Source: Rhodosorus marinus CCMP1338 (lineage: Eukaryota; Plantae; Rhodophyta). Taken from it: a DNA stretch of 64,000 nucleotides. How positions within the stretch are numbered: the first letter of the stretch is position 1; each line of letters opens with the position of its first letter. The translations under genes and the position numbers were made by a program. This document shows positions 2,915 to 61,914 of the stretch, one piece after another. The DNA lies in contig JAMWBK010000010.1 of NCBI GenBank assembly GCA_029953675.1, positions 1,426,001 to 1,490,000 on the forward strand, given 5' to 3'. A model generated the notes under the pieces. The model saw nothing but the letters and a program-made list of their open reading frames with translations, was not told where the DNA came from and ran no database searches.

Positions 2915-5216
2915 ATGTCGATCGCATTTGATGAGGCGGGTAGGCCGTTTATTATCGTGCGTGAGCAGGATAAAAAGGAGCGGTTGAAGGGGATCGAGGC
3001 GGTTAAGGTGAGGAAACCAGGGGTTCTTCGTTGCGTTTTGTTTGCTCTAGTATATTTCGTTTGAGGGCTGAGCGTGTTCGTGTGTATTTGTGCACTGGCG
3101 ATCGTTAAGGCGAACATCGCCGCAGCGAAGGCAGTCTCTAGAACGTTGAGAAGTTCGCTTGGGCCAAAAGGCATGGACAAGATGCTGCAGAATCAAGACG
3201 GGGAGGTTACTGTTACAAATGATGGGGCTACTATTCTTCAACAAATGGATTTACAGCATCAGATAGCAAAGTTGATGGTGGAGTTATCAAAAGCGCAGGT
3301 ACAGAGCTCAGCGGTCCGAAGCACTGCTCTCACCGCCATATAGAGTGAGTCTTTCTGCATCATATCTGCGGATGGTTCTAACCACCGGTTTTTCTGCTCC
3401 GCGGTTGTGAAGGATGACGAGATTGGCGATGGTACGACGGGGGTAGTTGTTCTCTGCGGCGCTCTACTCGAACGAGCAGAACGGCTCATTGACCAAGGAA
3501 TTCACCCCAGTAGAGTTTCTGAAGGATACGAAACTGCTTGCGACTTAAGTACGGAGCTATTGGCGAGAATTTCCGACGAGATAACTCTGAACGATACCAA
3601 GTTGACGGAGATGAAGAAAGTAGCTATGACAACGTTAAACTCCAAGATCGTCAACCGTTTCAAGGACAAACTTGCGGACATATGCGTCAGCGCTGTGACA
3701 TCGGTTGCAGACTTTGAGCGGAAGGACGTCAACTTGGATTTGATTAAAGTAGAAGGGAAGGTTGGAGGCAAGCTGGAGGACACGGTGAGAATCGCTTTGC
3801 GAATTTCTCAAACGATCAAAGAGCAATAAGAGCTGGAACTGACGAGATTTGTGTCCGGCGAATATGCGTTTTAACCAGAATCTAGTCAATGGAATTCTCG
3901 CAATCGACAAGGACTTCTCTCATCCTCAAATGCCGAGGCGCGTGGAAGACGCCAAAATCTGTATCCTTACCTGTCCTTTTGAGCCCCCAAAGCCCAAAAC
4001 GAAGCACAAGCTGGAGATCGATTCAGTGGAAAAGTATAAGGACATGCAGAAAGCGGAAATGGAGTACTTTCAGGACATGGTTAAGAAGGTTAAGGACTCG
4101 GGTAAGGCCTGAAGATTACCTTTAGAAAAGCTTTTATTGCTGCAGCGGAGCTGAAGCGAATGCCACTTCATCCTTTCAGGTGCTAACCTGGTGATTTGTC
4201 AATGGGGATTCGATGATGAGGCCAACCATCTCCTTTACAAGGCGGGGCTCCCTGCTGTTCGATGGGTTGGCGGAGTTGAGATTGAATTGATCGCGCTTGC
4301 GACAGGTGGGCGAATTATTCCTAGATTTTCAGAGATTTCACCGGAAAAGTTGGGCCGTGCTGGTGTTGTAAAGGAAGTGCACTTTGGGACTACTCGAGAT
4401 AGGATGATCGTCCTCGGTAAGTTGAATCGGCTTCGGTGCTTGCCGTGCAAACGTTTTTTGAGACCTCACAGCGCTCTCTTAATGCGACGTTGTTTTAGAG
4501 GATTGCGCAAAGTCCAAAGCCGTGACAATTTTCGTGCGTGGTGGAAACCAGATGATTCTAGAGGAAGCAAAGCGCAGCATCCATGATGCTTTGTGTATAG
4601 TCAGGAACCTCGTTGTGGTATGTGGCCAACAAGGCATCCTTTGCTAGAGGAGTACTTACTTGATATGCGTTCATTGCAAGCCATTGTTGCGGTCCGCCTT
4701 GTGGAAACGTGCTGATGCTGTACTTCTAACCGTGATCCATCAACAAAAACAGGATAATCGAATTGTTTACGGAGGCGGTGCTGCAGAAATCGCCTGCTCA
4801 AATTACGTTGCCGAAAAGATGAACGAAATTCCGGGTGTAGAACAGCACGCTGTTGGTGCGTTCAGCGAGGCTTTGGACAGTGTCGTGATGGCGCTAGCGG
4901 AGAACTCGGGACTCAACCCAATCGAAAGCTTGGGTGAAATCAAAGCCCGTCAGGTACAGTTCGGTCGCTCTTCAACAGGAAGAATAGATTGTTGGCTCTG
5001 GATTTTCTAACAGATATCGCGTTCCTCACCCTCCAGGCAAATGAAAAGAACGCACATCTTGGAATTGACTGTATGGGCCTTGGCGAAAGTGACATGAAAA
5101 AGCAGAGCGTTTTCGAATCGCTGCAGAGCAAGCAGAAGCAACTTCAACATGCCACCCAAATGTGCCGAATGATTCTAAAAATCGATGATGTCATTCAGCC
5201 CTCCCGGTATGAATAG
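2915..5216 (+). CDS. CCT5: T-complex protein 1 subunit epsilon (chaperonin CCT5), 8 exons
   Basis: [14 protein letters not shown] start, [61 protein letters not shown] and [10 protein letters not shown]. Introns 3007-3109, 3299-3412, 3785-3878, 4102-4179, 4416-4498, 4618-4752, 4954-5036. Confidence 0.97.
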
Positions 5217-5435
5217 GACCACTTGTATCTCACGAAACCCTGCGTCGTCCCAGAAAGGGGGCTCTAGACCACAGCCGCTTGAAGCGCAAGCTCCAATTTT
5301 GCTTGGACTTTAAAAAGGTCTTACCGTTTGCCCTCTCCTCGGAGGAAGGGTATTTTACAGAATTAGCAATCGCACAAGTTAACTAGTTAGCCCTGAAAAA
5401 AAAAAAGCTACAACGCAACATAACGTGAAAACACT

Positions 5436-7660
5436 CTAGAGCTCTCGCAGCAGTTCTTCAACTTCCCGTTTTCCTCTCTGAATTCCGTGCTTGACGTAGC
5501 TTCGCTGGGAGAGCTGAAAAGCCCGCTTCGCCTCATTAGGCATGCCAAGTGAGACCATGGCTGTCCCAAGTTCCTGCAGGGACGAGAGATGAATTGGTTA
5601 ACAACCCTTGATCTGTTTTCAGTTGCTGCAGCTTTGGAACACCCACCTGTAGAATCTGACCTTCGAGATACTCGTAGTTCTTGTAGGGTAATGTACATTT
5701 CTGCAAATGCTCCAAAGCGCTGATCAGCGTTTTCTTTGCACCCTGAAACCTCTTCTGGTTTGTCATCATGTGTCCGAGGTGTGCCAGCGCATTTGCGTAT
5801 TCGCGCGAGTTTTCCATCCCGTTGAGTTCCAGCATCCTCAGTTGCTTCAGAAACTCCTTCTCAGCGTTTTCGTAGTCTCCAATATGCATCAAAGTCTCTG
5901 CCACTACCTGTGTTCCAATAAAAGAAAGCAGACCTGCTCAATACCAACACATTCCGCGTCGGCGCGCGCATACAAAACCCCCGAGCAAGGATTTCTACCC
6001 TGTGGATGAAGCTGATCTCCTACCCCAAGACAGAGAGCGTAAGGAACACTTCCAGCCTCTTTGTTTCCGTCTCGCACGCGGAGGCTTTTCTTTGCGTGGA
6101 CGAGTGCCTCCCCATGTTTACCGACTTCGTTGTAGACCCTCGCGAGATTTTGATCGACGACGGATATCTCGAAGATAAGTTCTCGCTTCTCCTCTGGGGA
6201 CTTTGAGTTTTCTCGAAGCCCTTGCAATACTTTTCCAGCAGCGAGAAGAGGCGCCATCGCATCGACGTAGTTCAGACCGTCAATCTGTGCTCGAGCGAAT
6301 GCAAACAAAAGTCTCGCTGAATAGAGGCTCTTTTCTCGAGTTCCGCTTTCTCCGCTGCAAGTTTTCGAGAATACTTCAATAGCTCTGGAGTAGATTTTCA
6401 GCCTACTCTCGGAGTCCAGCGTGTAGCCTGTCCAAGGTCCAAGAGAATTATTTACGGGTCAGAACGCGAACGCGAGCGCGAGCAATGTGCACACCACCAA
6501 GCCATTTTCGAGGTACGCACGCAGTAAATATGAGCCTGTCAGCCATATGTTGTTGAATTTGGGCATCTCGCGGGCCAGTTCGAAAGCATATAAAATATTG
6601 CTCCGCTCCTGTTCAAACCTGGTCGTTCCAGTGGAATAACTTCTCATGCTGTCGCTCTTCCGCGAAAGCCCTTCAATGTGAGCGAGCTCGTTGAGCATGA
6701 AAGACACAAACGCCTCAGTGGCTTCGGCCATATCAACTCCAGTCCCTTCCTGCTTTTTGATTAGAAAATTATGAACCTACGCATTGCCACTAAAATCAGT
6801 CACGACGTCTACGCGCACCCGCAACGCCAAGGTGGCCCACTCTAGCGTGTTTCTGCGCCAGCAGCCACTTACCCTCTCGTTCATTTCAAGCCTATAAGTG
6901 CTCGAGTTCAGGATCAGCATTCCGCTGTCGGTTAGATCAGACAAGAGATCATTTCTTGACCTCGGGTCTTCGGATCCCTTCAACCACTTGTAGATAGCAA
7001 CCGCGCCATCAACCGAAAGTGAATCGCGAAACAGCGTGAACCCCAACAGCGCGTGCTGCATGCTGCTGGGGAGGTTGTTCCACATTTTCTCCACCTGGTC
7101 TACAAAATGTTTAGAGGTCCTCAGCGGGGAGCCCCCCAGTCCAGCTTGTAATTGTCCCCGTTTTGGCAAGTGTGAGCTTCCTCTCCGGACAAGCACCTTG
7201 GATGACCCCGCCCATCCACCTCCTCCAGACCCCGCGGAGTCGCCAGATTCGCCGACTCTCTATTAAAATCCCGCAGAAAATACACCCCTGGTCAGCCCTG
7301 ATCGAGGAACATAAACTACAATCTGTCCTTGGACGATAAGCGTTAAACTATGTGGTGGTTTGGACCTACCGTGCTACGTCTGGAATCGGCACTGTCCTCA
7401 GCCGAGCTCGCTTTTTGCTTCTTAAATACGGTTCCACTCGTTCCAACATGCTCCTGGGAATCACTCTGCCTGCGAGTAATCTCGCTTACTAGCTCATGCG
7501 CTCGTTTTCTTCTGGCAGTGTCGGAAGGTCCGAGGATAACATGGTCGGGTTGAGGTGGACTCACCTCCTCATAGGCATCCGGATCATGATTTAACAGATT
7601 CACGATCTTGATTTGATCCTGTTTCCGGTCAGCGCCATCCATCACTTTAACCAATATCAT
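5436..7660 (-). CDS. Multi-exon protein with low-complexity N-terminus, STAND-type winged-helix/helical region and C-terminal TPR repeats
   Basis: LPSSMQHALLGFTLFRDSLSVDGAVAI, LLSDLTDSGML..YRL and RFEQERSNILYAFELA resemble the post-NTPase region of NB-ARC-TPR proteins. TPR-like helices follow (LARVYNEVGKHGEALVHAKKSL, LAHLGHMMTNQKRFQGAKKTL). Last exon ends EELLREL* at 5436. Start is ATG 7660 or 7642. Confidence 0.72.
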
Positions 7661-8376
7661 TTCCTCACAACCAAGCCCCCATTGCCCCGACCCAATGTCA
7701 ACCACGCAGCTCTTAAAACATGTCCGCAAAACCTACAATCGAGAGCGAGAGATCGTCCCTACACTACAGCACCCTTCACCGAACGTCATTCCCTTCAAAC
7801 AAAGAACATTTTCCCACTGCAACAACCTGCTCAGAACTGATCAAATCACCAAACACTTTTTCCATCTATGAAAGACAACCAAATTTGCGGTGGGCTTTGA
7901 CGTTCATCACTCTCCACAAAATCCAACATAGACTCGATAAACATCAATTTCTCAGTGATAAGAAGACCTAGTTCATCTATCCTACCCCCTCCCCTCCCCA
8001 CAAACCCTTTCCATTCTCCATTCCACCCATTTTCTCCCCCCGCGGGTACCTTTTTCCGTTCTCAACGAGTGTGTTTGTGTGTACACCCTTGTTTTCGTTG
8101 ACAGGAAACAAACAAAAATCGGATATATAGAGCGGGCCTTGATTTTTGGTAAAACAATATTCGTTTCTTATGTTCACTTTGCACCCCTCAAAAAAGAGGA
8201 TCAACGACACACAACCCCTTCGATGGATAGGAGAAATACGTAGTGTAATTACATTATGCTTTAGGGGATAAACACTGTGTTGGGAGACTTGTCAGGCGGC
8301 TCGACGCTTAGAACTTTTTGAGGCTGTTTTCGCGTCGCGGGCACACGCAGGTTTTGACTCTTTTGTCTGCAGTATT

Positions 8377-8487
8377 TAAAAAGCTCTTGCTTTGCAACGC
8401 TGCCTTGGTTTTAGAGCCCCAATCTCTCTGTTTAAGGTCGTTTTCCTTTTCTAAGGGCTGATTGTCTCTGAATAGAACGATGGGTCC
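8377..8487 (-). mobile_element. Possible decayed Ty1/copia RNase H fragment
   Basis: GPIVLFRDNQ...SKTKAALQSKSFL resembles the copia pattern PxxLFCDNQ...RTKHIDxxxHF[IL] with similar spacing. Confidence 0.35.
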
Positions 8488-8760
8488 CACTGGCTCCCCA
8501 TAATGATTGGGGCAAAAAAGACAGTATATTTCGATCGGCGGTGATACCAAAATCAAGCAAAAGGGGTAAAAATTCTTACATCCTTCCCGCAGATGATCCG
8601 GTTGTTTGCATAGTTTCATTGCCTTGGCGAATCTCGGGTGTACGAGGATCTTCTTGGCCTCGGTTCATGACGGTGGGAACAAGGAGCCCCTTTGGCGAGA
8701 TGAGGTCGACATTGATTGTAAATGTACTCGAGTTCTCTTGGATGTGGGGCGATATGTACC

Positions 8761-8937
8761 CCGATTTTTTTCGGGAATGAAAATGGACACCTTGCCTTCA
8801 AGCTGTGGAGACTGAAGGTGGAAACATATCTAGATTATAGAGGGGTAGAGGGGGAGGAAACCTTGCCTCGGGCAAGGAGGAGAGGAAATGCACGAGCAAT
8901 CCTCATATCAATTGTGGACAATGCAGCTCTTGAGGTC
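8761..8937 (+). mobile_element. Decayed Ty1/copia gag N-terminal fragment
   Basis: PIFFGNENGHLAFKLWRLKVETYLDYRG...ARAILISIVDNAALEV resembles copia gag (PxFxG..[YF]xxWxxK[MV]ExYL...AxxxIxxxVxD). No intact pol or LTR seen. Confidence 0.5.
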
Positions 8938-9886
8938 ACCAGCCCAAGATCTACCCGGGCAGAAATTGGATTCTTGAGGTGTACTGTTGAATCAGCGGCG
9001 CCCACGCCGTAGTTTCCCGCCTCATCGCACTGGAAGTTGTTCACTTAGCATTCTCACCCCACTCAGGCTCTCCGCAAGAAGTTTGGTACGCAGATCAGGC
9101 AAATCGAACGGTATGGTAAATTTGCGCCGCTCTATCAATCACTTTGTCCCAAGAGTGAATTTTAAAACCCCCAGCAGAAGCACTGTCCACACAACTGGCC
9201 CATGGAACTCTTCTCGAAGAGTGGGTGCTTCTCGAAACGCGAATATCTTCAGTCACACAATTTGCCAGGCATTCTGACTTTGGATTTTAAGGAGAGCATA
9301 ACCGCTACAATATGTGCGAGGTAGTTCGTTCATTCTGCAGCCGATACTTCGGCAAAAAAAATCCAGACTGGCTCCTGGCTTTGTTAGAACGATATACACG
9401 TACAGGACAAGCGTCCATACTTTTTGGCTTTTGAAGTAGATAGTTAGACCTGACTCTGCTCCTTTCGTCAGAGCTTCACAACCCAAAACCCACCAGGTGC
9501 AGTGTGGAAATATATATTCCAAAACAATTGCCATAGAATTTGTCATAATTCTAAAAATAGGGCGGGCGAACATGTCAGTGGCAGGGAGGGTCACTGGTTG
9601 AGCAAACAACACTTCTGCTCTATATCTGTGTGGTAAGAAAATATCAAAATAGGAAGAAAAGCTGGGCTGCGCGGAAATACGTTTGTGTGCTTGGCGGAAG
9701 GAACTTGTCGTTATGGAGGTTTGTTCCGAGCAGATCTGCAAAATCTTCAGCTTTTTCCCGTTGCGCAATTCTTGGCCAAGAGTTCCGCTTGCGAAAGAAC
9801 ATGCATGGTTTTCGGGTAAGAAGCGTAAACCATTCCTCACAACCCTCTCTATCTGGACTGCTTGTAGGTCGTCACAAACATCTGTT

Positions 9887-10616
9887 TCTGCTTTTCCTCC
9901 TCAAGATCGAGAGTGGTCAACTCTGAGCAGTCACTTGTGGCAGCCTGGGGTCTCTTGAGGGTAGGGGTGTTACTTTTCTCGAAGATGGCTTCCGTGAGCA
10001 CCAGTCCGCACTCTCCGGTATGTACACGACTTTGAGCTTCGTGTTGTAGCGAACGAACGCCGCATCAAGCGCAATCGGTAGTTAAGTGCTCTCGGAGTAG
10101 TTAGTCTCTGATACGTGTGCTTGGTTTGTCTTTTTCTGAAGCGCCCCCAGAAAGTGCAAGTAAACGCAACCGTCCCTTCGGCTTGGCTCTTTAGTTCCTA
10201 CAGTTGTAGCTCGTCGCATTCCGCCCTGAGTAGCGCTTAAGCCTAGGTTTATAAATTCAAAGGTGTGCGTGTAGCTCCGGTGGGACTGCTGACGTTGTGT
10301 GCTCTACTTCGAGACACGTATTCGAGGGATAACAGTGCCGAGATTGGTGTGGCGAAGCGAGCTTTTCAGCGCTCCTCGCGAAACTTCGCATGCACGGAAA
10401 TCAGAGGGGTGAGTAGGAGGTTGAAGAACTTTTGGGAGAGCTCTACCGCGTTTTCATGTTTCTATTGCGTTGCACCATTTTCGGGGTATCTAGGTAGAGC
10501 GAACGCTCTGCTCCCGCAACACGTTGAGAAATCACTCCAAGCCTCATTCATGGGGTGAGCCAATCACAGGATCAAGGCTTCGGGACGTCGCCCTACGTAT
10601 CGGCTAGAAAGCGCAC
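9887..10616. repeat. Mosaic of decayed fragments copied from the adjacent MCM5 gene, in both orientations
   Basis: Inverted: 9887-9928 vs 12478-12519 (38/42); 10134-10163 vs 12425-12454 (24/30); 10261-10305 vs 12378-12425 (37/45, one 3-nt gap). Direct: 10543-10605 vs 13843-13905 (48/63 ungapped); accagtccgcac near 10000 vs 13772. Confidence 0.85.
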
Positions 10617-10727
10617 AAGAATAAAGAACGTGCTTTTTATGAAAGGTCCCAATGCCGCAAAACACCAAATCGTGGTCGTGCGGGTAACTCGCTAGTTTTT
10701 CGATAACATCCCAGCTGAAAAATTAAC

Positions 10728-11206
10728 GCGGGAAGCTGATACTCTATGCGCGGGAAAATAGATTTGTATTGGTAAAAAACTATTTCTACAAAATTATGCT
10801 TTTCGGGGATCATAAATATTGAATAATTTCTTACTTCCTTTAAGGCTTTTTCGTAAAATTGGTCGGATTTTTTTTTTGGTAAACGTGTGAAACAGCAGGC
10901 ACCCTGAAACACATGTTTTAAAACGTCTGAGAAAATTCAACAACAAATAAAGATTTCGCGATCGACCGAAACCAAGGTAACCCAAGGCCGAGGTATGGAC
11001 AAATGTAATCAGCCACTCTCATGATTAACGTTCTTCCTACCCCCTGCTAAGTTTCCTCCATTTGAAAAGTTTTTAAAAAACAGAAATATTTAAGCTTACT
11101 TTTGGTCGGTAGGGGAAAACTGGTTTGATCCATTTTGGGGGGGTTCGGTATTAGACTTGTTTGAGGTTTTTGCCGTTATTTTTTTGGATATCCTCGGCGC
11201 GGGAAG
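10728..11206. promoter_or_regulatory. E2F-like sites upstream of MCM5
   Basis: GCGGGAAA at 10750-10757 (reverse complement of TTTCCCGC); GCGGGAAG at 10728-10735 and 11199-11206. Confidence 0.5.
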
Positions 11207-11498
11207 ATGACCTGGATGTGTTAGTGATGTGGGCATAAGACTTGAGGGGGAAGGGAAAGGTGGACGTAGGCAAGCTGGTGGGGTTGACCGGGTGGAGCAG
11301 CGTTGTTGTATGATTCACGGGGCTGAAGGACATGAAATGGAGTATTTGTATTTGAGGTTGAGTTTCTGATTGGGAAGGTGTATATGCGTAAGGGGAATCT
11401 CTCTATTTTCGGGGAGGGGGTGGGGGGAGACGCTTGCTAGCTTGTTTAGCTCTGTGAGGATTTTTGAGAAGGTTTCGGAGTAAAAATAACGTGGTACG

Positions 11499-13863
11499 AT
11501 GACGGATTGGGATGAAGGGAGTGTCTACTACTCCTATCAGAGTCTGGAAACACCGGGTAGTTCCGGAGCAGGTCTTGATGATGGTGAGATCACGGGAGCA
11601 AAGGCAAGAATGCGTTTTGGAAAGTTCCTGCTGGATTTTTCGGAGAGGAATAGGTACCTCTACAGGGAAAGAATGCTGAATGGGATCAACGCCGGTGAGC
11701 CTAGCTTGTCGGTATCCCTGGACCACCTTCAAGAGTACGATGAACAGCTTGCGTCCTGTGTTAGAAAGAACCCGGGTTTCTACGCTCCGATTCTCGAGCT
11801 TGCTGCGGGAGAGATTTCAGTGAGGCTTAGGAATGACACGGATGCAGACGAGCTCGTGGCTTCACACGGCGACGAGAATGAAACTGCGAGCGAAATCCGC
11901 AGAAGATCAAATGTGCAAGTTGTTTTGACCTCGACGGAAATGCCAAAATACATTCGAGAGCTCCAGGCATCAAACATATCTTCCTTTGTACGAGTGTCTG
12001 GTATCGTGACATCGGCCTCAAAGGTACAATGCAAAGCCGTGGCAATTCGCTTGGAGTGCAAGAATTGCAGATCTCGAATAACCTTGCGCGTTCCGCCCGG
12101 TATTGGCGGTGTCGTGATTCCGAGAAGCTGTCAGCGCTTGCACGCTGAAGGTGAAGCTCCGTGTCCAATTGACCCATACGTCGTACTCCCAGATGATGGA
12201 GAGTTTCGCGATCAGCAGATTATTAAGCTTCAAGAACTTCCGGAAGAAGTTCCTACTGGAGAAGTGCCACGGACCGTCATGGCTTCCCTGGATCGTGCGC
12301 TTTCCGGTCGGCTCTCTCCTGGTATGAGGGTTTCACTCTTTGGTATCTACAGTATTTTCAGTCCCCGAGAGCGGAGCAGAGCTCAAAACGTCGGCGGTCC
12401 TGGGACCGGAGCTACTCGGACGCCTTACTTGCACGTCCTTGGAATGCTTCAGAACAGCGATGCTGGGGCAGGTGGCCGCTCAGAGTTGACCACTTTCGAC
12501 CTTGAAGAGGAAGAGCAGATGCAGAGACTCGTCAGGACTCCCAATCTGTATGAGCTGATTGTTTCTTCGATTGCACCAGAGATTTATGGATTCGATGATG
12601 TGAAGAGGGCGGTGGCCGTGATGCTCTTCGGAGGATCCAGGAAACACCTTCCGGACGGGACTCGCATTAGAGGTGACATTAACGTTCTCCTACTTGGAGA
12701 CCCTTCGACTGCGAAATCCCAGCTCCTCAAGTTTGTTGAGAAGGTCGCACCGATCTCGGTCTATACGTCGGGTAAGGGCTCATCCGCGGCGGGCCTTACG
12801 GCATCCGTTATTCGTGACGGTGGTAGTTCAGGAGACTTTCGACTGGAAGGCGGGGCGATGGTACTCGCGGATGGTGGGGTTGTATGTATCGATGAGTTCG
12901 ACAAGATGCGTATCCAGGACTCTGTAGCAATTCACGAGGCTATGGAACAACAGACAATCTCCATTGCGAAGGCGGGAATCACTTCTGTTTTGAATGCTCG
13001 AACTTCGGTCCTCGCCGCAGCCAATCCAGTTTTCGGGAGGTTCGACGACACCCGCTCTGCTGATGAGAATATCGACTTCCAGACTACAATTCTTTCCCGC
13101 TTTGATCTCATCTTCATGGTTCGAGACACCCGAAATGAGGAAATGGACTACGCGAAAGCTCAGTTCGTCCTGCAGTTGCACCAGAGAGGGGGAGCTGCTA
13201 GAGCGAATTCTGGTGAAGGTGGTGATGAATCGCACCTGAGCCTGGAGACCCTGAAGCGCTTCATCGCTTACGCTAGGTCAAGGTGTGCACCTCGACTGAC
13301 CCATCAGGCTGCAGGGATCTTACGGGATACCTACGTGCGTATGCGTCAGCAAGTTCGACAGAATGACGAGGATTCGGTTGTCCCAATTACAGTTCGTCAG
13401 CTTGAGTCACTCGTGAGGTTGACAGAAGGGCTTGCGAAGATGTCGCTCTCCGCGCTCATCACTGAGGCCCACGTCAATGAAGCTATTCGCCTGTTCAAGG
13501 TGAGTCACGAAACCAATCAGCATGGGATGCACTCGCAGCTCTTGTACATGCATGGACTGAAGGTGTCCTCTGTTTTTCTTTCTCATCTTTCGCTAGTCCG
13601 CAACCATGGAGTCGGTCGCCGCTGGCGCTGTGAACTTGGATGGACGGCTGTCCGATGCTTTGAAATTGGAAGTAGAACGAGCGCAGGAGGTCATGCAGAG
13701 ACGGCTGCCCATTGGTTCATCAACAAGCAAGAGAAAAGTGATTTTTGAGCTAAAGAATCAGGGAATCTCCGACCAGTCCGCACGTCTCGCAATTGAGTTC
13801 ATGAACAAGCGTGGCGATGTCGAGTTGAGGAGTCAGCGCAAGCTCATTCATCGCGTGAGATGA
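11499..13863 (+). CDS. MCM5: DNA replication licensing factor MCM5, 2 exons (intron 13500-13596)
   Basis: Zn motif CKNC..CPIDPY, Walker A GDPSTAKSQ, Walker B IDEFDKM, arginine finger SRFD, ITVRQLESLVR, and a C-terminal winged helix. Confidence 0.98.
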
Positions 13864-14225
13864 TCACAGGATCAACGATTCGGAACGCTGTCCTATGCAT
13901 GGTCTGAATTGCTGCGATCATATCAAGCTCTCTAAAAATCAGTGTACTATGGTTACGTATTCAATTAACTCTACTTCTGAGTATTAATAAAACAATTGAA
14001 CTTCAATTTTGGACAGCAGAGGTCTTCCGACAGTATTCTCGGTCAGCCGTGAGTGGAGCAGGGCTGCGATGCCAGCACTAGGTGAGCCACCCCGTGATGC
14101 AACCCCTTCCCCTTTCCCCCTCGTTTTCCTTCTCAGTCGTTGAAGGAAATGGACTAAATTCAATGTACATGGGTACTGTTCAATGTTGGAGACATTCGGC
14201 TTCTCTACGTATCGTGAAGCCCTGC

Positions 14226-16713
14226 TCAAACATCTCGACGGAGAAGCTCGATGATATTCTGACAAAGCACAATCAGCTTCGCGGGGTTTTTGGACTTATT
14301 CACCAATCTACGGAGCTGCGAAGACTCCGACTCCTCCTCGAGACACGCGAGCGCAGCTCTCAGAGTGACCTGATTGGTACCGTGGTTTGTAACATGAGTG
14401 GAGCTCCACTATCAGAAACTTGGTCATCAGCGCATAACCTGCTAACGAATCTACAGCAGTACCTGATTAGGAGACAGCCCCCTCTCTAGCATTTGTTCCA
14501 ACACAGACGCGACACCTTCCATGTCGTTCACTTTCGCGTGGGCATCCGCAATTGCCGTGAAGGTGTAAACGTTGGGTTCGACTCTCGCTTGCTCCATCCG
14601 TTTGAGGATATTCCGCTAGCAACAGAAACAAGAGCCAACAGGTTTCGATTCAATTCATGTCTTACGCACGCGGAGAGAGACTGGGTCTGTCCTCATTGAA
14701 TGAACCCTAAACGGGGTAACCTACTGCACCGGCCACGTCCCGTCTTCTCGCATAGATGCTCGCCAATATTGAGAAGGACTTCGTGTCCGGAGAGGGACCG
14801 CTTCCCTTCATTTCCAGAACAAGTTTCTCTGCTCTCCCAGTGTCAGCAACCTTCGAGTATGCGGAGAGCAGCGTGTTGTACCTACAACGAGGGCGACCGA
14901 GGATTAGAAAATCTACGCCCTCCGAACACTGTCCAGACGCCGCTGACACTTTCACTTACGTATCAATTGTCTGGTAAACATCTTTGTCCTTCATCTCCTG
15001 GAAGAGCTTCTCTGCATCGTCAACTCGGCACGTGTTTCCTAGGCCGTTGATCAGAGAATTCCACGTAATTGTATTGGGAAGCTGCCCGTCTTCCTCCATA
15101 TCAGAACGCAGTCTTAACGCTTTGTTGATTTCACCACGCTTTGCACGTGCATCGATCAGTGAAGAGTAAGTAACGACATTCGGCTTCAGGCCCTTCGACC
15201 GCATCAACCTCAGACTTCGATCAGCGCCGTCAAAGTCACCAGCTTTTGCGTGAGCATTGATCTGTCATATCGAGAAGAAAAAGCACCTAATTAATTACGC
15301 CAGTCTTGTATAGAAGATCACGACGGCTACGCCATGTCAGTTGGCGATTTCCCCACTCACAAGCGAAGAGTACGTAAAAACGGATGGTTTGAGATTCTCG
15401 GACTGAATCAATTCCAGGACACGGTTCGCGTGCTTGACATTGCCTTTCTTCGCACACTGCTTCAGAAATATATTAAAGGTTATGACATCGGGTCCGGCAA
15501 TCCATGCAGCTTGCTTCATGTTCTCCAAGTACGCGTATGCGGTTTCGTAGTCATCCTGCTCGCAGAAACTGTTGATCAAGGTGTTGTACGTTGTTGAATC
15601 GGGCAAGACCTGATTGCAAACCGAAAAGCATTGAAAACAAAGGCTTATGAGCGAGGAAGGCCACCCCGATTCTTCTCAACAAAAGGCTTCCATACCGAAT
15701 GCATGTGCATCGCATTCAACAGGCCCTTGAGCTTTTCCAAACGCCCCGCGTTCGCGTACGCCAAAGCGAGAGTGTTGTACACCACAGCATTTTTTTCAAT
15801 ATTCTCCTTCTCCATGTGATCCATAGCCTGTTCGGCCAAATCCACTAGCCCTCTTTTCGCATAGACAGACATCAGCGCCCCAAATGTCACCACATTCGGT
15901 TTCACCTTGCGTGAGATCATTTCTATGAACATGGCTTCTGAATTGGTGGGCTTGTTGGCCTGGGTGAGGAGCCGGGAAAGCATGGTGTAAATTCAGAGGG
16001 ACGGTTCACTAGAAGAGCTCTGCTAGCTATTGAGGTATGCTTCTTTGCTCAAGGTACTCGTGAGAACGCGCTTATTAGTGCTGAATAAGTAAAGGTGTCT
16101 GGGCCGATTTTTCTGCGTTCCATTTCCTCCTTCAGTTCCAGGGCCTGATCAATATCTCCAAATCTTCCGAATGTTGATATCATGAAGTTATATATATATA
16201 TATTCGCCTTTCCTGCGCTCTAACGGCTCAAAGCGAGGCGCAAGGGTTAGCCTCGACACTGCACTCTGGCTTAGGGCGGTATAACCTTACCCGCAACTCG
16301 TCCATGTACATAGTGGCCTGCTTCATGTTCTGCCTCGACACGAGAGTACGGAGCATTTTGAGGTTGCGTCTACAATCACGAGTGGTGTTGGTTGCAGTTT
16401 CAACATGCTCCAAAAACTCAGGGTCCAAAAACTCTGTCCCATCTCCCGGAACTGGTCGTATGGGTATCGAAGGTGCCTTTAGGAAGCAAAGAAAATCCCC
16501 AGTAGCCGCAAGGGTAGCGTTAAGCCTAACAGCACTGAACATTAGGCAAAATCAGGAGACCGAGAGGTTACTCACCACAATATCCAACTTCGGCACCCTC
16601 CTTATATCCCTCTGTTTCTTATTTACATATCCATCCGGCCTCCTCAAACATACCGTCAATTCTCTTCGTACATCCTCCCGACACAAAGCAACAGCATCGA
16701 TAAAACATGCCAT
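14226..16713 (-). CDS. P-type pentatricopeptide repeat (PPR) protein, multi-exon, probably organelle-targeted
   Basis: Repeated 35-aa PPR motifs (PNVVTFGALMSVYAKRG, PDSTTYNTLINSFC, PNVVTYSSLIDARAKRG, PNTITWNSLINGLG, PNVYTFTAIADAHAK). MACF start at 16713. Last exon ends ELLRRDV* at 14226. Confidence 0.9.
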
Positions 16714-17159: not shown

Positions 17160-17212
17160 GTTGCAAATTTCTTAGAATGGAGTTGCAAATTTCTTAGAAT
17201 GGAGTTGCAAAT
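17160..17212. repeat. 22-bp tandem duplication, 2.4 copies
   Basis: gttgcaaatttcttagaatgga twice, followed by gttgcaaat. Confidence 0.9.
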
Positions 17213-22597: not shown

Positions 22598-22809
22598 GGC
22601 AAGACAGAAGGACAACTTCGAAAACACAGCATCAACTTGCTTGTAAGGGGTGTTATTTCCTTATTTTCGTGTCTCAGTAGGAAGCAGACAAGTGAGCTGG
22701 CAAAGGCCTTGAACTGGATGCAAGGCCTTTGCCAGCTCTGTAATGGTGTTTAAAGGGACGGTGTCCGGTATCTTTGCACGTGTGGAAAATAATTAGCGTC
22801 CGTCGTTTT

Positions 22810-23942: not shown

Positions 23943-24636
23943 AGCTCAACCAAAAAGAAAACACACCCCTGTCCCCCTACAAAAAAGAAATTAAAAACAC
24001 CTACTCTCCTATAAATCTAACCAAAAACACAATTATCTTTTTATTAACCTCTCCCTCACTCCCGCACTCCCTCACTCCCCTTCCTCTCTCCGTCCCTCCC
24101 CAAACCTCTTCACCTTCTTCCCCAAACCCCTCGTCATATAAATACACAAAAAAAAATCTCTCGTCGACTTACCATTCCAAAAATATCAAAAAAATCCCCC
24201 CTTTCATCGCACCGAATCTATTCCTCCAAAATTCAATATGATTTCAAGTAAACAAAAATTATTATCTAAACAGGAGAAAATACTTCAGTGTAAACAATTT
24301 CTATTAAATTTCATTATCGTTGGAGCTCTGGGCGTTTTCCGTCATGATGGCCGTCGCCCCCCTTTTTTGGTGTTTTTTTTCTATGACGGAAATTCTCCCG
24401 TTTTTCTCCCTGCATCGGAATTTGTTTTAATAATTTAATAATATCGACGTTGATTTTGAGGGGTTTTAACAGGTCAGGGCATTCGCTATCACTGGGAGAG
24501 GTTACTTGCAAGTGGTAGCAATAGTAAGAGCAACGTATCGTCGGTAGTCAGGCAGCTATCCGTATGTGGTGTGTCCCCAGGGCCCTCCGTGTGTCAGAGC
24601 GATCGCTTCGGGAGGGGGGCGGGGTGCCTACTGTTG

Positions 24637-24832
24637 TCTTCGCCTTTCTACAATCTTCGTACTGTGTTCGATGTCCCTTTTCCTCGACATCGACAGGGGA
24701 AACCGCCCCCATGCGTCGTTGGTTACGGCAATCCTGGAGAAGAGGCTCTGAACGTTCAAGGCAGACAAGGGATTGTCGATGTCAAGGAAAACGGACATAG
24801 AACACAGTACAAAGATTGTAGAAAGGCGAAGA
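24637..24832. repeat. Inverted repeat: 58-bp arms (54/58 matched) around an 80-nt loop
   Basis: 24637-24694 tcttcgcctttctacaatctt...cgacatcgac pairs with 24775-24832. The ORF track shows LRLSTIFVLCSMS on both strands. Confidence 0.92.
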
Positions 24833-25449
24833 GAGCAGCAGACCCCCTGAAGCAATCACTCCGACGCACAGAGAACCCGACACGAGGTTTGGGTAGTGGA
24901 ATCTGGTATTAATAATATTGGATTCTGGTTTCGACTGGTTTTTGATCTGCTACTTTGTTGTTGCATTTCTTCCAGTTTGCGCAGCGGGGTTTGGAATTGG
25001 GGTGATGAAGATGGGGGCTTGTTGTCTTGTCTGGTTTAGTATCTTGGTCTGCTTTCTTCAGTCTTGTAGTGATGATTTTAGTTATCAGAGTTCATTTTCC
25101 TCATGAGTTCCACGACTTGGTTAGTGGTTATTTGGTACTGCGCACCTGCTGGTGGACGATTAGGGCTCGTAGATGCACTCGCGCCCGGAAGCAGGACCCT
25201 TCAGAACAGCAATAATGGTATTGCGCTTCTGTAGCAGGTCGCCTGGATCAGAAAAGATTCCCACTTCCCTGGGATGGCGGGTCTTGCGCTGCGCAGTCTC
25301 ACTTCACGGTGTGTTTACCAAGGAATCAATTGGTTTTCAGCGTTGAGCGCTTAATTATAACGGATCAGTTGATTGTTTATCAAGTTAGTATTGGCATGCA
25401 ATGGGAAAAACGACGACGTGCCCTGGAGGGTCCCAGGTCCGTTCGCACC

Positions 25450-59300: not shown

Positions 59301-61914
59301 ATATATACGTCATCCGAAAAGTGGCTAATCCTTTCTTCCTGAACTCCCGATGCTACACGCGAAAAGGAGCAAGATCTTCTGACAAAGGCCAGGTCGGAAT
59401 ATTATGGAACCAGCGCAATGCCGCCAACGCAGCAGCAGCCGGGTGCACCGCAACAAGGGGTCCCGCAGCAAATGACGAGGCCCCAGGGGCTCCTACCCGA
59501 TCAAGGAATGCCAACCTTTGAAGATGACAATCAACAGCACATACTCGAGCCACTTACAAAGCACTTACTGTACCTATTGGCGGAGGAGCCATCGCTTTAC
59601 GTTCGTTGTAAATCAGCGGAAGCCTTTCTCCTCTTCATTGCTGCTGGAGCCGGATCGTCGGTATGTTGACCAACGCAAGCAGCTTACAATCCTGAATTTG
59701 AAAAAGTCAGAGTCTCTAAACGCTACAAGTGCCTCCTATCGTCTGATTAGATTGAGGACAAGCTCGAGGAAGACGAGGACGGTGCTGTTGAACCCCAATC
59801 TGCAGGGTTTCGGGACCGTAGTATTCGACCAGGGACGTCGTTTGAAGAGGACAGGAGGAACCAAAGAGGTCCGCCACTCAATGAACAAGGCGAACTGAGA
59901 AGTATGGTTGACAACGGGGGCATCCCAAACGATGTACAAAGTGGCCCACCGGGAGGCCCACCGGGAGGCCCACTGGAAGGCCCACCGGAAGGCCGTGGGG
60001 GTCCGCCTAGAGGTCCACTTCCTATGGGACTACCTCGGACACGACCTGAAGACGCGAAACCGCCGCCTCCACCACCGCTACCCCCTCTGATAAGGTTCTT
60101 CAGACCCTTCCTATGCAATGAAGGGATGAAAGGACATATCGCTCTCGACGCGTTGCAACCGTTTCTCGAGTCGCTGATCTTCGAGGTGCGATAAACAGCA
60201 CAAGCGTTTCAAAATTTGCGCGGAGACGATCAAGTGAATTTCTACTTGCTGACAGGCCCTTCTGCTTTCCCTTGCTGTTGTGATCACCTTTCCACTTGAT
60301 GTTCTCAGGTTCCGGACGTGGCGCCGTGGCTTGCAATCCAAGTAGTAGAACTTTTGGAGGATTGCGCGTTCTATCATGGTACTAAAGGTTGGTGTGGGTA
60401 CCTTCTTGAAGCGTGGGAAAATGTACTGGCAATTGGTAAGCGCTAAAGCCGTGCTGGATGCACCGCTCGACACGGTCTCGTTGTGTAATCCTTCGCAGTT
60501 CATAGGCTAATTGAGTTCTTGTTCACCTCGTTCAGCTACGATTCCGTGTGCCCACGCCGTCGCGGACTCTGTGCGTAGATGCGCTGAAGCCCTGTACGTT
60601 CATATCCATTTGCTCTATTCTCGTGGCTTTAGGGAGTGCTCCTCGTCATACCTCTTTGCTCATGCGTTGGTCTTTATATTTGCTCCCGAGCAGGCCTGAC
60701 CGAGAGCGACTGTCCGCGACAGCTGCGCAGTTCCTGCGAAGGCGTGTCCTTGATCTGACGGTTTTGTCGGTGGGGGCGGGTGAACTTATGGTAAAAGGTG
60801 TTCCGACGCCATTGCCGCAGGTAGTGGGCTCCGAGATGGAATCACATTTCTCTCTGATTTACCACGGAATTTTGATGGGACCGTCCCCAGAAAGCCGGTA
60901 GGTGTTGGAACATGAGCTTCTGATGTCTCCATTCGCCGTCATTTTCGAGAGGGAGAGCTTAAGATGGGCTTGTTCCGCGTTTTATCGACCGCCATAGGCA
61001 ATGCTTTGTAGACGCCCTCGGTGGAGCTGCCGTTTTGGCCGGTGACCCTTTCCGTATTAATGCATATGAGAAACTATGTGAGTTGAGGCTTGCTCGAGGA
61101 CTCGGACTGCGTGCCGCGGTCGACTTCGTTCTCTGCGCCCTCGACACATTGTATTCCACTCGCGAAAGGCTCGCAGAGGCCAGACTTAAGCTTCGCGAAC
61201 AAGGTATGTTTGCCTGGACTGGTCACGATACGAGGTGAACGGTTCTGTTCAGCAGTTAACCTCACTCCTCTTCTCTCAGGCGGAATTACGAACAGAAGCC
61301 GAGAGGAGGTATGGCTACAAGGAGTATGGAAACTTGCTGCTGAAGCCAGCGCTGCGGCTGGAAGCCTACTAGCAACTCCCCCTCCTCCAGGTATGTTCTC
61401 AGAGCTGTTGACCGCATCGCGGTCAGCGCCGAATTGTTTTTTCGCGAAAACGACGCTTATTTGAGAATCCTGTGCATCGCAAATTCGTGCTTTCCAGGAT
61501 GGCAACCGTTGGGAGCTGATGCCGCCAACGACGTAAGAGCTGCTGAAGAGCTGCTGGGAGACTTCCGGAAGTTTAAGATATCAGGTGAAGACCTGGAAGC
61601 GAAGCTGGTATGAGCCATCGTCTGAAACCTAACTGCGACGGGTCATTGATGCAGCCAGGTTTGAGAGGTGTGGTTTTATTTAATTGCTTTTGTTCTGCTT
61701 ATGTCATGTCCAGGAGGATCATGGACTAATGCCACCTGAGCAACGTGACATAGAGAATGGAAACCCTGCGCATGACCCCAGGGTGGATCCTAGGAGCGAT
61801 CGGAGGATGGACCAACGTGGAGACCTCAGAAACGATCAACGGGGTGGTCCAAGGGCGCTGCCACAGGACGGAGGGGGTGGAAACGGACCACCTCCGCCAC
61901 CGGGCCGGCGATAA
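56374..61914 (+). CDS. TSET/TPLATE complex large subunit TSAUCER (plant TASH3 homologue), many exons
   Basis: Motifs match recalled Arabidopsis TASH3 in order: KLLSIYPPDRSLLP/KLAVYNSVDPSLAP, SEDRSICRL/CEDRNVLRY, RKGLFG..GGD...LQLAVYGAL/KKGVFG.KGGD...LQYAAMSAL, LRNPSGRV/LLDPSERV, PALEVVMRRI/PLIKLVMRRL, LYVRCK/VYVRAM, PDVA/PDMA, AGDPFRINAYEKL/SGEPFRLQIYEFL, GLG...LDTLY/GLG...LDEMY, QPLG/LPLG. Start codon approximate. Confidence 0.85.

Follow-up and report, generated by a model that had tools for sequence, protein, structure and literature searches.

How does a short stretch of intergenic DNA come to carry pieces of two neighboring genes, in both orientations and split by unrelated inserts? This question is raised by a 749-nt non-coding mosaic upstream of MCM5 in a red alga of the genus Rhodosorus (Stylonematophyceae). 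It lies at positions 9857-10605 of the window, i.e., of the whole stretch of 64,000 nt that was analyzed, and all positions given below are those of the window. The nuclear assembly of R. marinus CCMP1338 is based on long reads, comprises 31.2 Mb with 8392 genes and 15% repeats, and is reported to be unusually rich in insertions of mitochondrial DNA (NUMTs) that arose via end joining (PMC10250338). An earlier note on this DNA had described the mosaic as a patchwork of MCM5 pieces only, and had proposed either iterative template switching or capture by a mobile element as its origin.

Copied pieces and their donors

The model of MCM5, which is based on Pfam and on the transcript L001 of a related MMETSP strain, has 756 codons including the stop codon, and its product contains the domains MCM_N, MCM_OB, MCM, MCM_lid, and MCM5_C. 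The protein is 97% identical to that encoded by L001 (92.7% for the coding DNA) and 73% identical to that of Purpureofilum. An exact-protein look-up of the MCM5 open reading frame of the window yielded no match. For the TPR-like gene, which is located across the mosaic from MCM5, the end was set with the R. marinus protein P0123 and the transcript L004, and matches of its product were found among proteins named Rhodosorus marinus. The transcript assemblies of related strains reach either side of the mosaic, one stopping at about 7750 and the other, L001, beginning at about 11401, approximately 780 bp downstream of the mosaic. The TPR-like gene is convergent with a CCT chaperonin gene, and MCM5 is convergent with a PPR gene. 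The assemblies L001 and L004 cross these convergent pairs (13864-14936 for MCM5/PPR and 5034-5576 for TPR/CCT), which suggests that the 3'-ends of the partners overlap. It was also observed that the last intron of the TPR-like gene is retained in some MMETSP protein models (P0121), with a C-terminus differing from that of P0123, and that the model P0122 ends prematurely within an intron further upstream. Both observations indicate that introns were retained, or transcripts left unspliced, in the assemblies concerned.

Table 1. Genes, donor segments, copied pieces, and intervening stretches (positions in the window; z scores over shuffles).
Feature	Position	Strand	Identity or origin	Match	z
MCM5	exon 11499-13499, intron 13500-13596, exon 13597-13863	+	stop codon 13861-13863	related transcript L001 and Pfam	
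TPR-like gene	~7750 down to its end; last intron 5574-5645, last exon from 5573, TAG 5436-5438	-		P0123 and L004	
Donor 1	12372-12549	+	MCM5 exon 1, N-terminal to AAA+ linker, RSRAQNV...RLVRTPNL		
Donor 2	13824-13905	+	MCM5 3'-end across the stop codon		
Donor 3	5402-5535	-	3'-end of the TPR-like gene, last exon		
Piece C	9857-9944	-	reverse complement of MCM5 coding 12462-12549	65/88, E 1e-11	21.7
Insert 1	9945-10133 (189 nt)		GC 0.51; no protein match; replaces 7 nt of donor (12455-12461)		-0.2
Piece B	10134-10163	-	reverse complement of MCM5 12425-12454; collinear with A and C	24/30	7.8
Insert 2	10164-10259 (96 nt)		flanked by a 2-nt AA overlap of donor coordinates		2.0 (not significant)
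Piece A	10260-10311	-	reverse complement of MCM5 12372-12426	42/55 with 3-nt deletion, E 2e-5	12.5
Spacer 3	10312-10347 (36 nt)				-0.4
Piece T	10348-10481	+	reverse complement of TPR-like 5402-5535	105/135, E 3e-24	43.9
Spacer 4	10482-10522 (41 nt)				0.2
Piece M3	10523-10605	+	direct copy of MCM5 13824-13905	62/83, E 2e-10	22.6

Within the 749 bp, short-word BLASTN and a repeat search agree on five decayed copies of three donor segments, with identities of 74-80% and in both orientations (Table 1). All five pieces stand out from shuffled sequences (z = 8 to 44, compared with positions 1-22000 of the window), and the flanks at 9350-9856 and 10606-11000 reach chance-level scores in the Smith-Waterman comparison with the same region. 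Relative to MCM5, three segments are inverted and two are direct. The three inverted MCM5 pieces C, B, and A retain the order of the donor and are split by the two inserts, as had been described before. The boundaries and counts given for them earlier need revision in part: the piece said to start at 9887 (37/45) is only the core of piece C, the match of 24/30 is identical with piece B, and the count of 38/42 for the third piece was too generous, the alignment of piece A giving 42/55 with a 3-nt gap. The minus-strand translation of piece C reads SELTTLDLEEEKQ, compared to SELTTFDLEEEEQ in MCM5, and that of piece A reads SRAHNVSSP-TGATRTP, compared to SRAQNVGGPGTGATRTP. An interpretation of the inserts as introns of a paralogous exon was rejected, as the pieces A, B, and C are in three different reading frames. 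The direct piece from the 3'-end of MCM5 that had been located at 10543-10605 (48/63) is also present, but it begins 20 nt further upstream and spans the stop codon; piece M3 combines the 12 C-terminal codons and the stop codon with 42 nt of 3'-UTR, in sense orientation. A 12-mer near 10000 that had been added to the list of MCM5 pieces does exist (10000-10011 equals 13772-13783), but about 1.5 such matches are expected against the window by chance and a 13-mer shared with an unrelated place also occurs, and it was thus dismissed.

The largest piece, piece T with 134 nt, had been missed. It covers the TPR-like gene from the last 32 codons through the stop codon and on into 34 nt of 3'-UTR, with the sense strand on the plus strand, and therefore the mosaic is not derived from MCM5 alone. 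All identified donors are situated at most 5 kb from the mosaic, on both sides of it, and reside in intact genes, the models of which agree with the transcripts of related strains. The intactness of the donors reveals that the pieces were copied and pasted, and the earlier view that the locus is not a simple tandem duplicate was correct. A different MCM paralogue with a better match had been named as an observation that would speak against a derivation from this gene. However, 42 nt of the MCM5 3'-UTR were copied as well (76% identity), which identifies this MCM5 locus, and not a paralogue, as the donor. Mis-assembly was also considered and rejected, because a collapse or a chimera is expected to yield near-identical copies, in contrast to the identities of 74-80% found here. 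A chance origin is excluded by the E values of 3e-24 to 2e-5, the z scores of 8-44, the collinearity, and the lack of any other dispersed repeat in the 64 kb.

The zones in which convergent genes terminate harbor two of the three donor segments, and this is only suggestive with regard to the origin of the mosaic.

Two local palindromes aside, the self-BLAST of the whole window uncovered no further dispersed repeat across the 64 kb. A short palindrome of 45 nt at 22694-22738 with 84% self-complementarity came from this comparison. A long, near-perfect hairpin is located at 24622-24847, the 74-nt arms of which (24622-24695 and 24774-24847) are 88% complementary and enclose a loop of 78 nt; its predicted RNA fold has -131 kcal/mol (z -11 compared to shuffles), and either a MITE-like element or a hairpin-RNA locus is conceivable. 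In addition, tandem repeats are present at 17160-17212 (22-nt unit, 2.4 copies) and 59943-59994 (12-nt unit, 4.3 copies).

For nearly half of the mosaic, 362 of 749 nt (48%), neither the window nor protein databases yielded a donor. Smith-Waterman comparison of the two inserts and of spacers 3 and 4 with positions 1-22000 revealed no donor, a tblastn search of the window with all open frames of 7750-11450 did not add any, and the six-frame pseudo-protein of the mosaic had no match among 5.8 billion proteins or among PDB sequences. Donor proximity is therefore shown for half of the mosaic only. The GC content of the unassigned stretches (0.50-0.61) is gene-like, compared to 0.38 in the AT-rich flank, and their sources may be genes or organellar DNA, possibly mitochondrial minicircles, located outside the window. 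At the junction of B and A the donor coordinates overlap by the 2 nt AA, and at the junction of C and B 7 nt of the donor are skipped, while at the other junctions microhomology is unreadable because of the divergence of about 22% and the unknown partners. A translation of 10615-10674, just outside the mosaic, resembles the Walker-A stretch of MCM5 (12660-12728) weakly, with a tblastn E of 0.098 and about 50% of the nucleotides identical when counted by hand, and this resemblance was judged to be due to chance.

Decay, age, and coding capacity

The copies have decayed in a manner that looks like neutral drift as far as can be read from the sequence, with frameshifts, an in-frame stop codon, lost stop codons, and mismatches at every codon position. 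In piece T, 1 nt has been deleted, a TAG occurs in frame at 10414-10416, and the stop codon has changed from TAG to TAC (10444-10446). Piece M3 has gained 1 nt, and CAA stands in place of its stop codon TGA. In the coding pieces from MCM5, the mismatches at the three codon positions amount to 11/58, 8/56, and 20/56. Transcripts of related strains were used as a third sequence to assign the changes at 401 sites to branches, and 80 changes fell on the branch of the copy, compared to 15 on that of the donor and 24 on that of the related strain. On the copy branch transitions and transversions are balanced (40:40) and there is no RIP-like bias; the transition/transversion ratio is thus 1.0, versus about 1-2 between orthologues. 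A signature of RIP-like mutation or of error-prone synthesis was considered, and the transition/transversion ratios gave no clear signal of it.

The divergences of the pieces are 26, 20, 19, 21, and 24%, and within this range of 19-26%, which carries wide error bars, none of the pieces is measurably younger or older than the others. For the third codon positions of MCM5 the distance between the window and L001 is 0.19 (Jukes-Cantor). At codon positions 1 and 2 the copy differs from the donor by 0.19, whereas MCM5 differs between the strains by only about 1%. At sites at which the TPR donor and L004 differ, the copy shares the state of the donor in 10 cases and that of L004 in 8; for MCM5, the corresponding counts are 12:2 for the middle pieces and 3:4 for the 3'-piece. 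Taken together, these distances and counts place the copying, roughly 0.2 substitutions per site ago, approximately at or before the split of these Rhodosorus lineages. The mosaic thus appears to predate the divergence from the MMETSP R. marinus strains or to be of similar age. Scans of metagenomes did not reveal an orthologue of the block in other strains.

Judged from its sequence, the mosaic would have neither coding capacity nor a detectable RNA function, and nothing in it indicates a function. The open frames of 7980-10555 contain no Pfam domain, and there is no match to Rfam or to tRNAs. The RNA fold is no better than those of shuffled sequences on either strand (z +0.5 and +2.2), and internal inverted arms were not found. 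The longest perfect matches between copies and donors are 17, 13, 11, 11, and 10 nt, so that the perfect complementarity to MCM5 is at most 17 nt. Neither a stable fold nor near-perfect complementarity of at least 20 nt, which would characterize a hairpin, a MIRNA-like locus, or an antisense locus, was thus found. Selection that keeps the mosaic matched to MCM5 does not seem to operate.

An open frame of 215 codons on the minus strand (9256-9900) extends across the left border of the mosaic. No Pfam domain is present in it, its 215-aa product has no homologue among 1.84 billion representative proteins, and it is probably due to chance. A hidden gene in 7730-11400 was likewise rejected, based on the lack of a Pfam domain, of a homologue of the 215-aa frame, and of an Rfam or tRNA match.

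Origin of the mosaic

We regard it as somewhat more probable than all other readings combined (roughly 0.55) that an old complex templated insertion, which would have been generated via serial template switching, left the mosaic behind as a fixed scar. This view is favored because five copies of three donors in both orientations are clustered in 749 bp, while no other dispersed repeat exists in the 64 kb. The donors are intact, and the five segments stem from three donor sites, in direct and in inverted orientation. If the donors had been placed randomly in the window, the chance that all of them lie within 5 kb would be about (10/64)^3 = 0.004. The hallmarks of transposons and of retrocopies are lacking, which was counted in favor of a templated insertion, and so was the reported unusual richness of the R. 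marinus genome in NUMTs acquired via end joining (PMC10250338). The similar divergence of the five pieces fits one event or a short burst; both the single event and the template-switch mechanism are what we infer from the arrangement. The earlier proposal of iterative template switching thus remains the most economical origin for clustered short copies in both orientations from donors on both sides, but the case is circumstantial, with decayed junctions and 48% of the mosaic lacking an identified donor.

The event could have started upstream of MCM5, with a DNA break or the stalling of a fork between the genes, whereupon a nascent strand would have copied one nearby template after another, in stretches of 30-135 nt. 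Its first template would have been the opposite strand of MCM5 exon 1, which it would have left twice and re-entered close to where it had left; in the donor, the pieces A, B, and C resume almost exactly at the end of the preceding stretch, which fits a strand that leaves and re-engages one template. The strand would next have turned to the TPR-like gene and copied its 3'-end, 5 kb to the left, and then the 3'-end of MCM5, 3 kb to the right, after which it would have rejoined the chromosome, and the mosaic would have been subject to neutral drift from then on. An event of this type could have been MMBIR/FoSTeS or the formation of 'filler DNA' by polymerase theta, in the latter case in a long-range form. 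In yeast and humans, complex multi-fragment templated insertions have been described that include fragments of one locus in opposite orientations, with donors at fragile or R-loop sites (PMC11724301), and fillers copied from nearby molecules by polymerase theta are also documented (PMC10923293). With lengths of 30-135 nt and donors 2-5 kb away, the pieces exceed typical polymerase theta fillers, and this counts against a templated insertion of that kind.

The arrangement of the pieces C, B, and A allows a second reading, because a contiguous 178-nt copy that was later hit by two independent insertions would look identical. The mosaic might accordingly have grown stepwise, by an inverted duplication of MCM5 12372-12549 that was later split by two fillers, with the copies of the TPR-like gene and of the MCM5 3'-end as separate repairs at a recurrent break site. 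The 2-nt duplication at the junction of insert 2 and the 7-nt loss at that of insert 1 are typical of small end-joining insertions, and piece divergences of 19-26% with wide error bars also leave room for such a history. It would require, however, four or five independent events in 750 bp and none in the surrounding 63 kb, and no piece has a measurably different age; we consider it unlikely, albeit worth keeping in mind. A very unlikely alternative is that a large inverted segmental duplication of the TPR-MCM5 interval eroded by deletions that left a few islands. The pieces C, B, A, and T are indeed collinear with the reverse complement of 5402-12549, but the acceptor site is inside the supposed duplicated interval, piece M3 is wrong in both orientation and order, and inserts 1 and 2 are insertions and not deletions. 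Furthermore, 6.8 kb would have had to vanish leaving 36 nt, and no other trace of MCM5, its promoter, or the TPR-like gene was found at the nucleotide or the protein level. The capture of gene fragments by a DNA transposon (Pack-MULE, another Pack-TIR element, or a Helitron) that has since decayed, the other origin proposed earlier, could explain several gene fragments in mixed orientation, which such elements carry (PMC8277862), as well as the gene-like GC content throughout the mosaic. However, terminal inverted repeats, a target-site duplication, and Helitron-like ends (5'-TC...CTRR-3' with a 3' hairpin) are lacking at the mosaic; the best inverted arms are 14-18 nt long with 72-86% complementarity and are located away from its borders, and no duplication is present at 9857/10605. 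Neither a transposase remnant nor any other Pfam domain is present in 7980-10555, there is no second copy in the 64 kb, and the identified donors are all adjacent, whereas captured fragments are usually unlinked, so that this origin is very improbable.

RNA could also have served as the template, if fragments of local transcripts had been reverse transcribed, with template switching between mRNAs, and patched into a break. The pieces T and M3 are both 3'-ends of genes with the stop codon and the proximal 3'-UTR, and their sense strands are on the same strand. Against this, no poly(A) tract follows T or M3, a flanking target-site duplication is missing, piece T seems to run about 17 nt beyond a T-run instead of stopping at the end of a transcript, and the pieces of MCM5 exon 1 are antisense and interrupted. 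All three donor segments are intronless and thus offer no intron loss to score. An involvement of RNA templates is hence hardly to be expected. We are just as skeptical about a functional non-coding locus, i.e., an antisense or small-RNA source or a regulatory element that acts on MCM5 and the TPR-like gene, although the mosaic has not been deleted over roughly 0.2 substitutions per site and is antisense to an essential gene. The earlier suggestion of antisense or double-stranded RNA has no support in the sequence, given the identities of only 74-80%, the perfect complementarity of at most 17 nt, the mismatches at every codon position, and the lack of a stable fold (z +0.5 and +2.2), an Rfam match, and internal inverted arms; moreover, the related strain has an MCM5 transcript whose start, at about 11401, is well downstream of the mosaic. 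Some broader scenarios may be added, which are speculative and quite unlikely: the mosaic could be the scar of an ancient chromosomal rearrangement that joined CCT/TPR to MCM5/PPR and was filled from both partners, or one of many local patchworks produced by an unusually filler-prone repair that is also behind the richness in NUMTs, or, more boldly, it could be transcribed into an antisense RNA that modulates MCM5. On its own, the mosaic would be a neutral scar, and the biology of MCM5 would be unchanged by it.

Comparison with known systems

If the mosaic originated by a templated insertion, its closest relatives would be the MMBIR/FoSTeS-type insertions reported for yeast dna2, rad27, and RPA mutants and for the human germline and cancer (PMC11724301). 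Common features are several short copy-paste segments at one site with retained donors, and mixed orientations, including copies of one locus in opposite orientation. The location of the mosaic donors at gene ends or in zones of convergent transcription is comparable to the fragile or R-loop donors reported there (PMC11724301). In contrast to those cases, the mosaic is fixed, ancient, in the germline, and red-algal, and it is known only after a decay of about 22%; in addition, half of it has no known donor, one template was engaged three times, and the junction microhomology is unreadable. With the fillers made by polymerase theta in plants, C. elegans, and mammals, it would share iterative primer-template switching that yields patchworks of direct and inverted flanking sequence (PMC10923293, PMC4912351, PMC2943611). 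Typical fillers, however, have a few to a few tens of nt, mostly less than about 40, and come from tens to hundreds of bases away, whereas the pieces of the mosaic have up to 135 nt and come from 2-5 kb away.

The NUMT insertions of R. marinus, reported to be unusually frequent in this genome (PMC10250338), would have in common with the mosaic the capture of foreign DNA pieces at nuclear breaks, but the identified donors of the mosaic are nuclear and local. Captures by Pack-MULEs, Pack-TIR elements, and Helitrons also result in non-coding mosaics of fragments of several genes in mixed orientation (PMC8277862). Here, the mosaic differs in that it has no termini, no target-site duplication, and no copies elsewhere in the window, and in that its donors are all adjacent. 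According to the model of Allen et al. from 2004, young MIRNA and hairpin loci are born by inverted duplication of the target gene. The mosaic resembles young MIRNA loci in that it contains an inverted copy of part of a protein-coding gene in nearby intergenic DNA, but it lacks paired arms and a stable hairpin, and its perfect complementarity is limited to 17 nt.

Multi-segment templated insertions are mostly known from mutant yeast, cancer genomes, and experimentally induced breaks. The mosaic most likely adds a new example to this known class of mutational scars, and it would be a clean case from nature, one that has become fixed in a lineage of red algae and whose identified donors are located to either side of the site.
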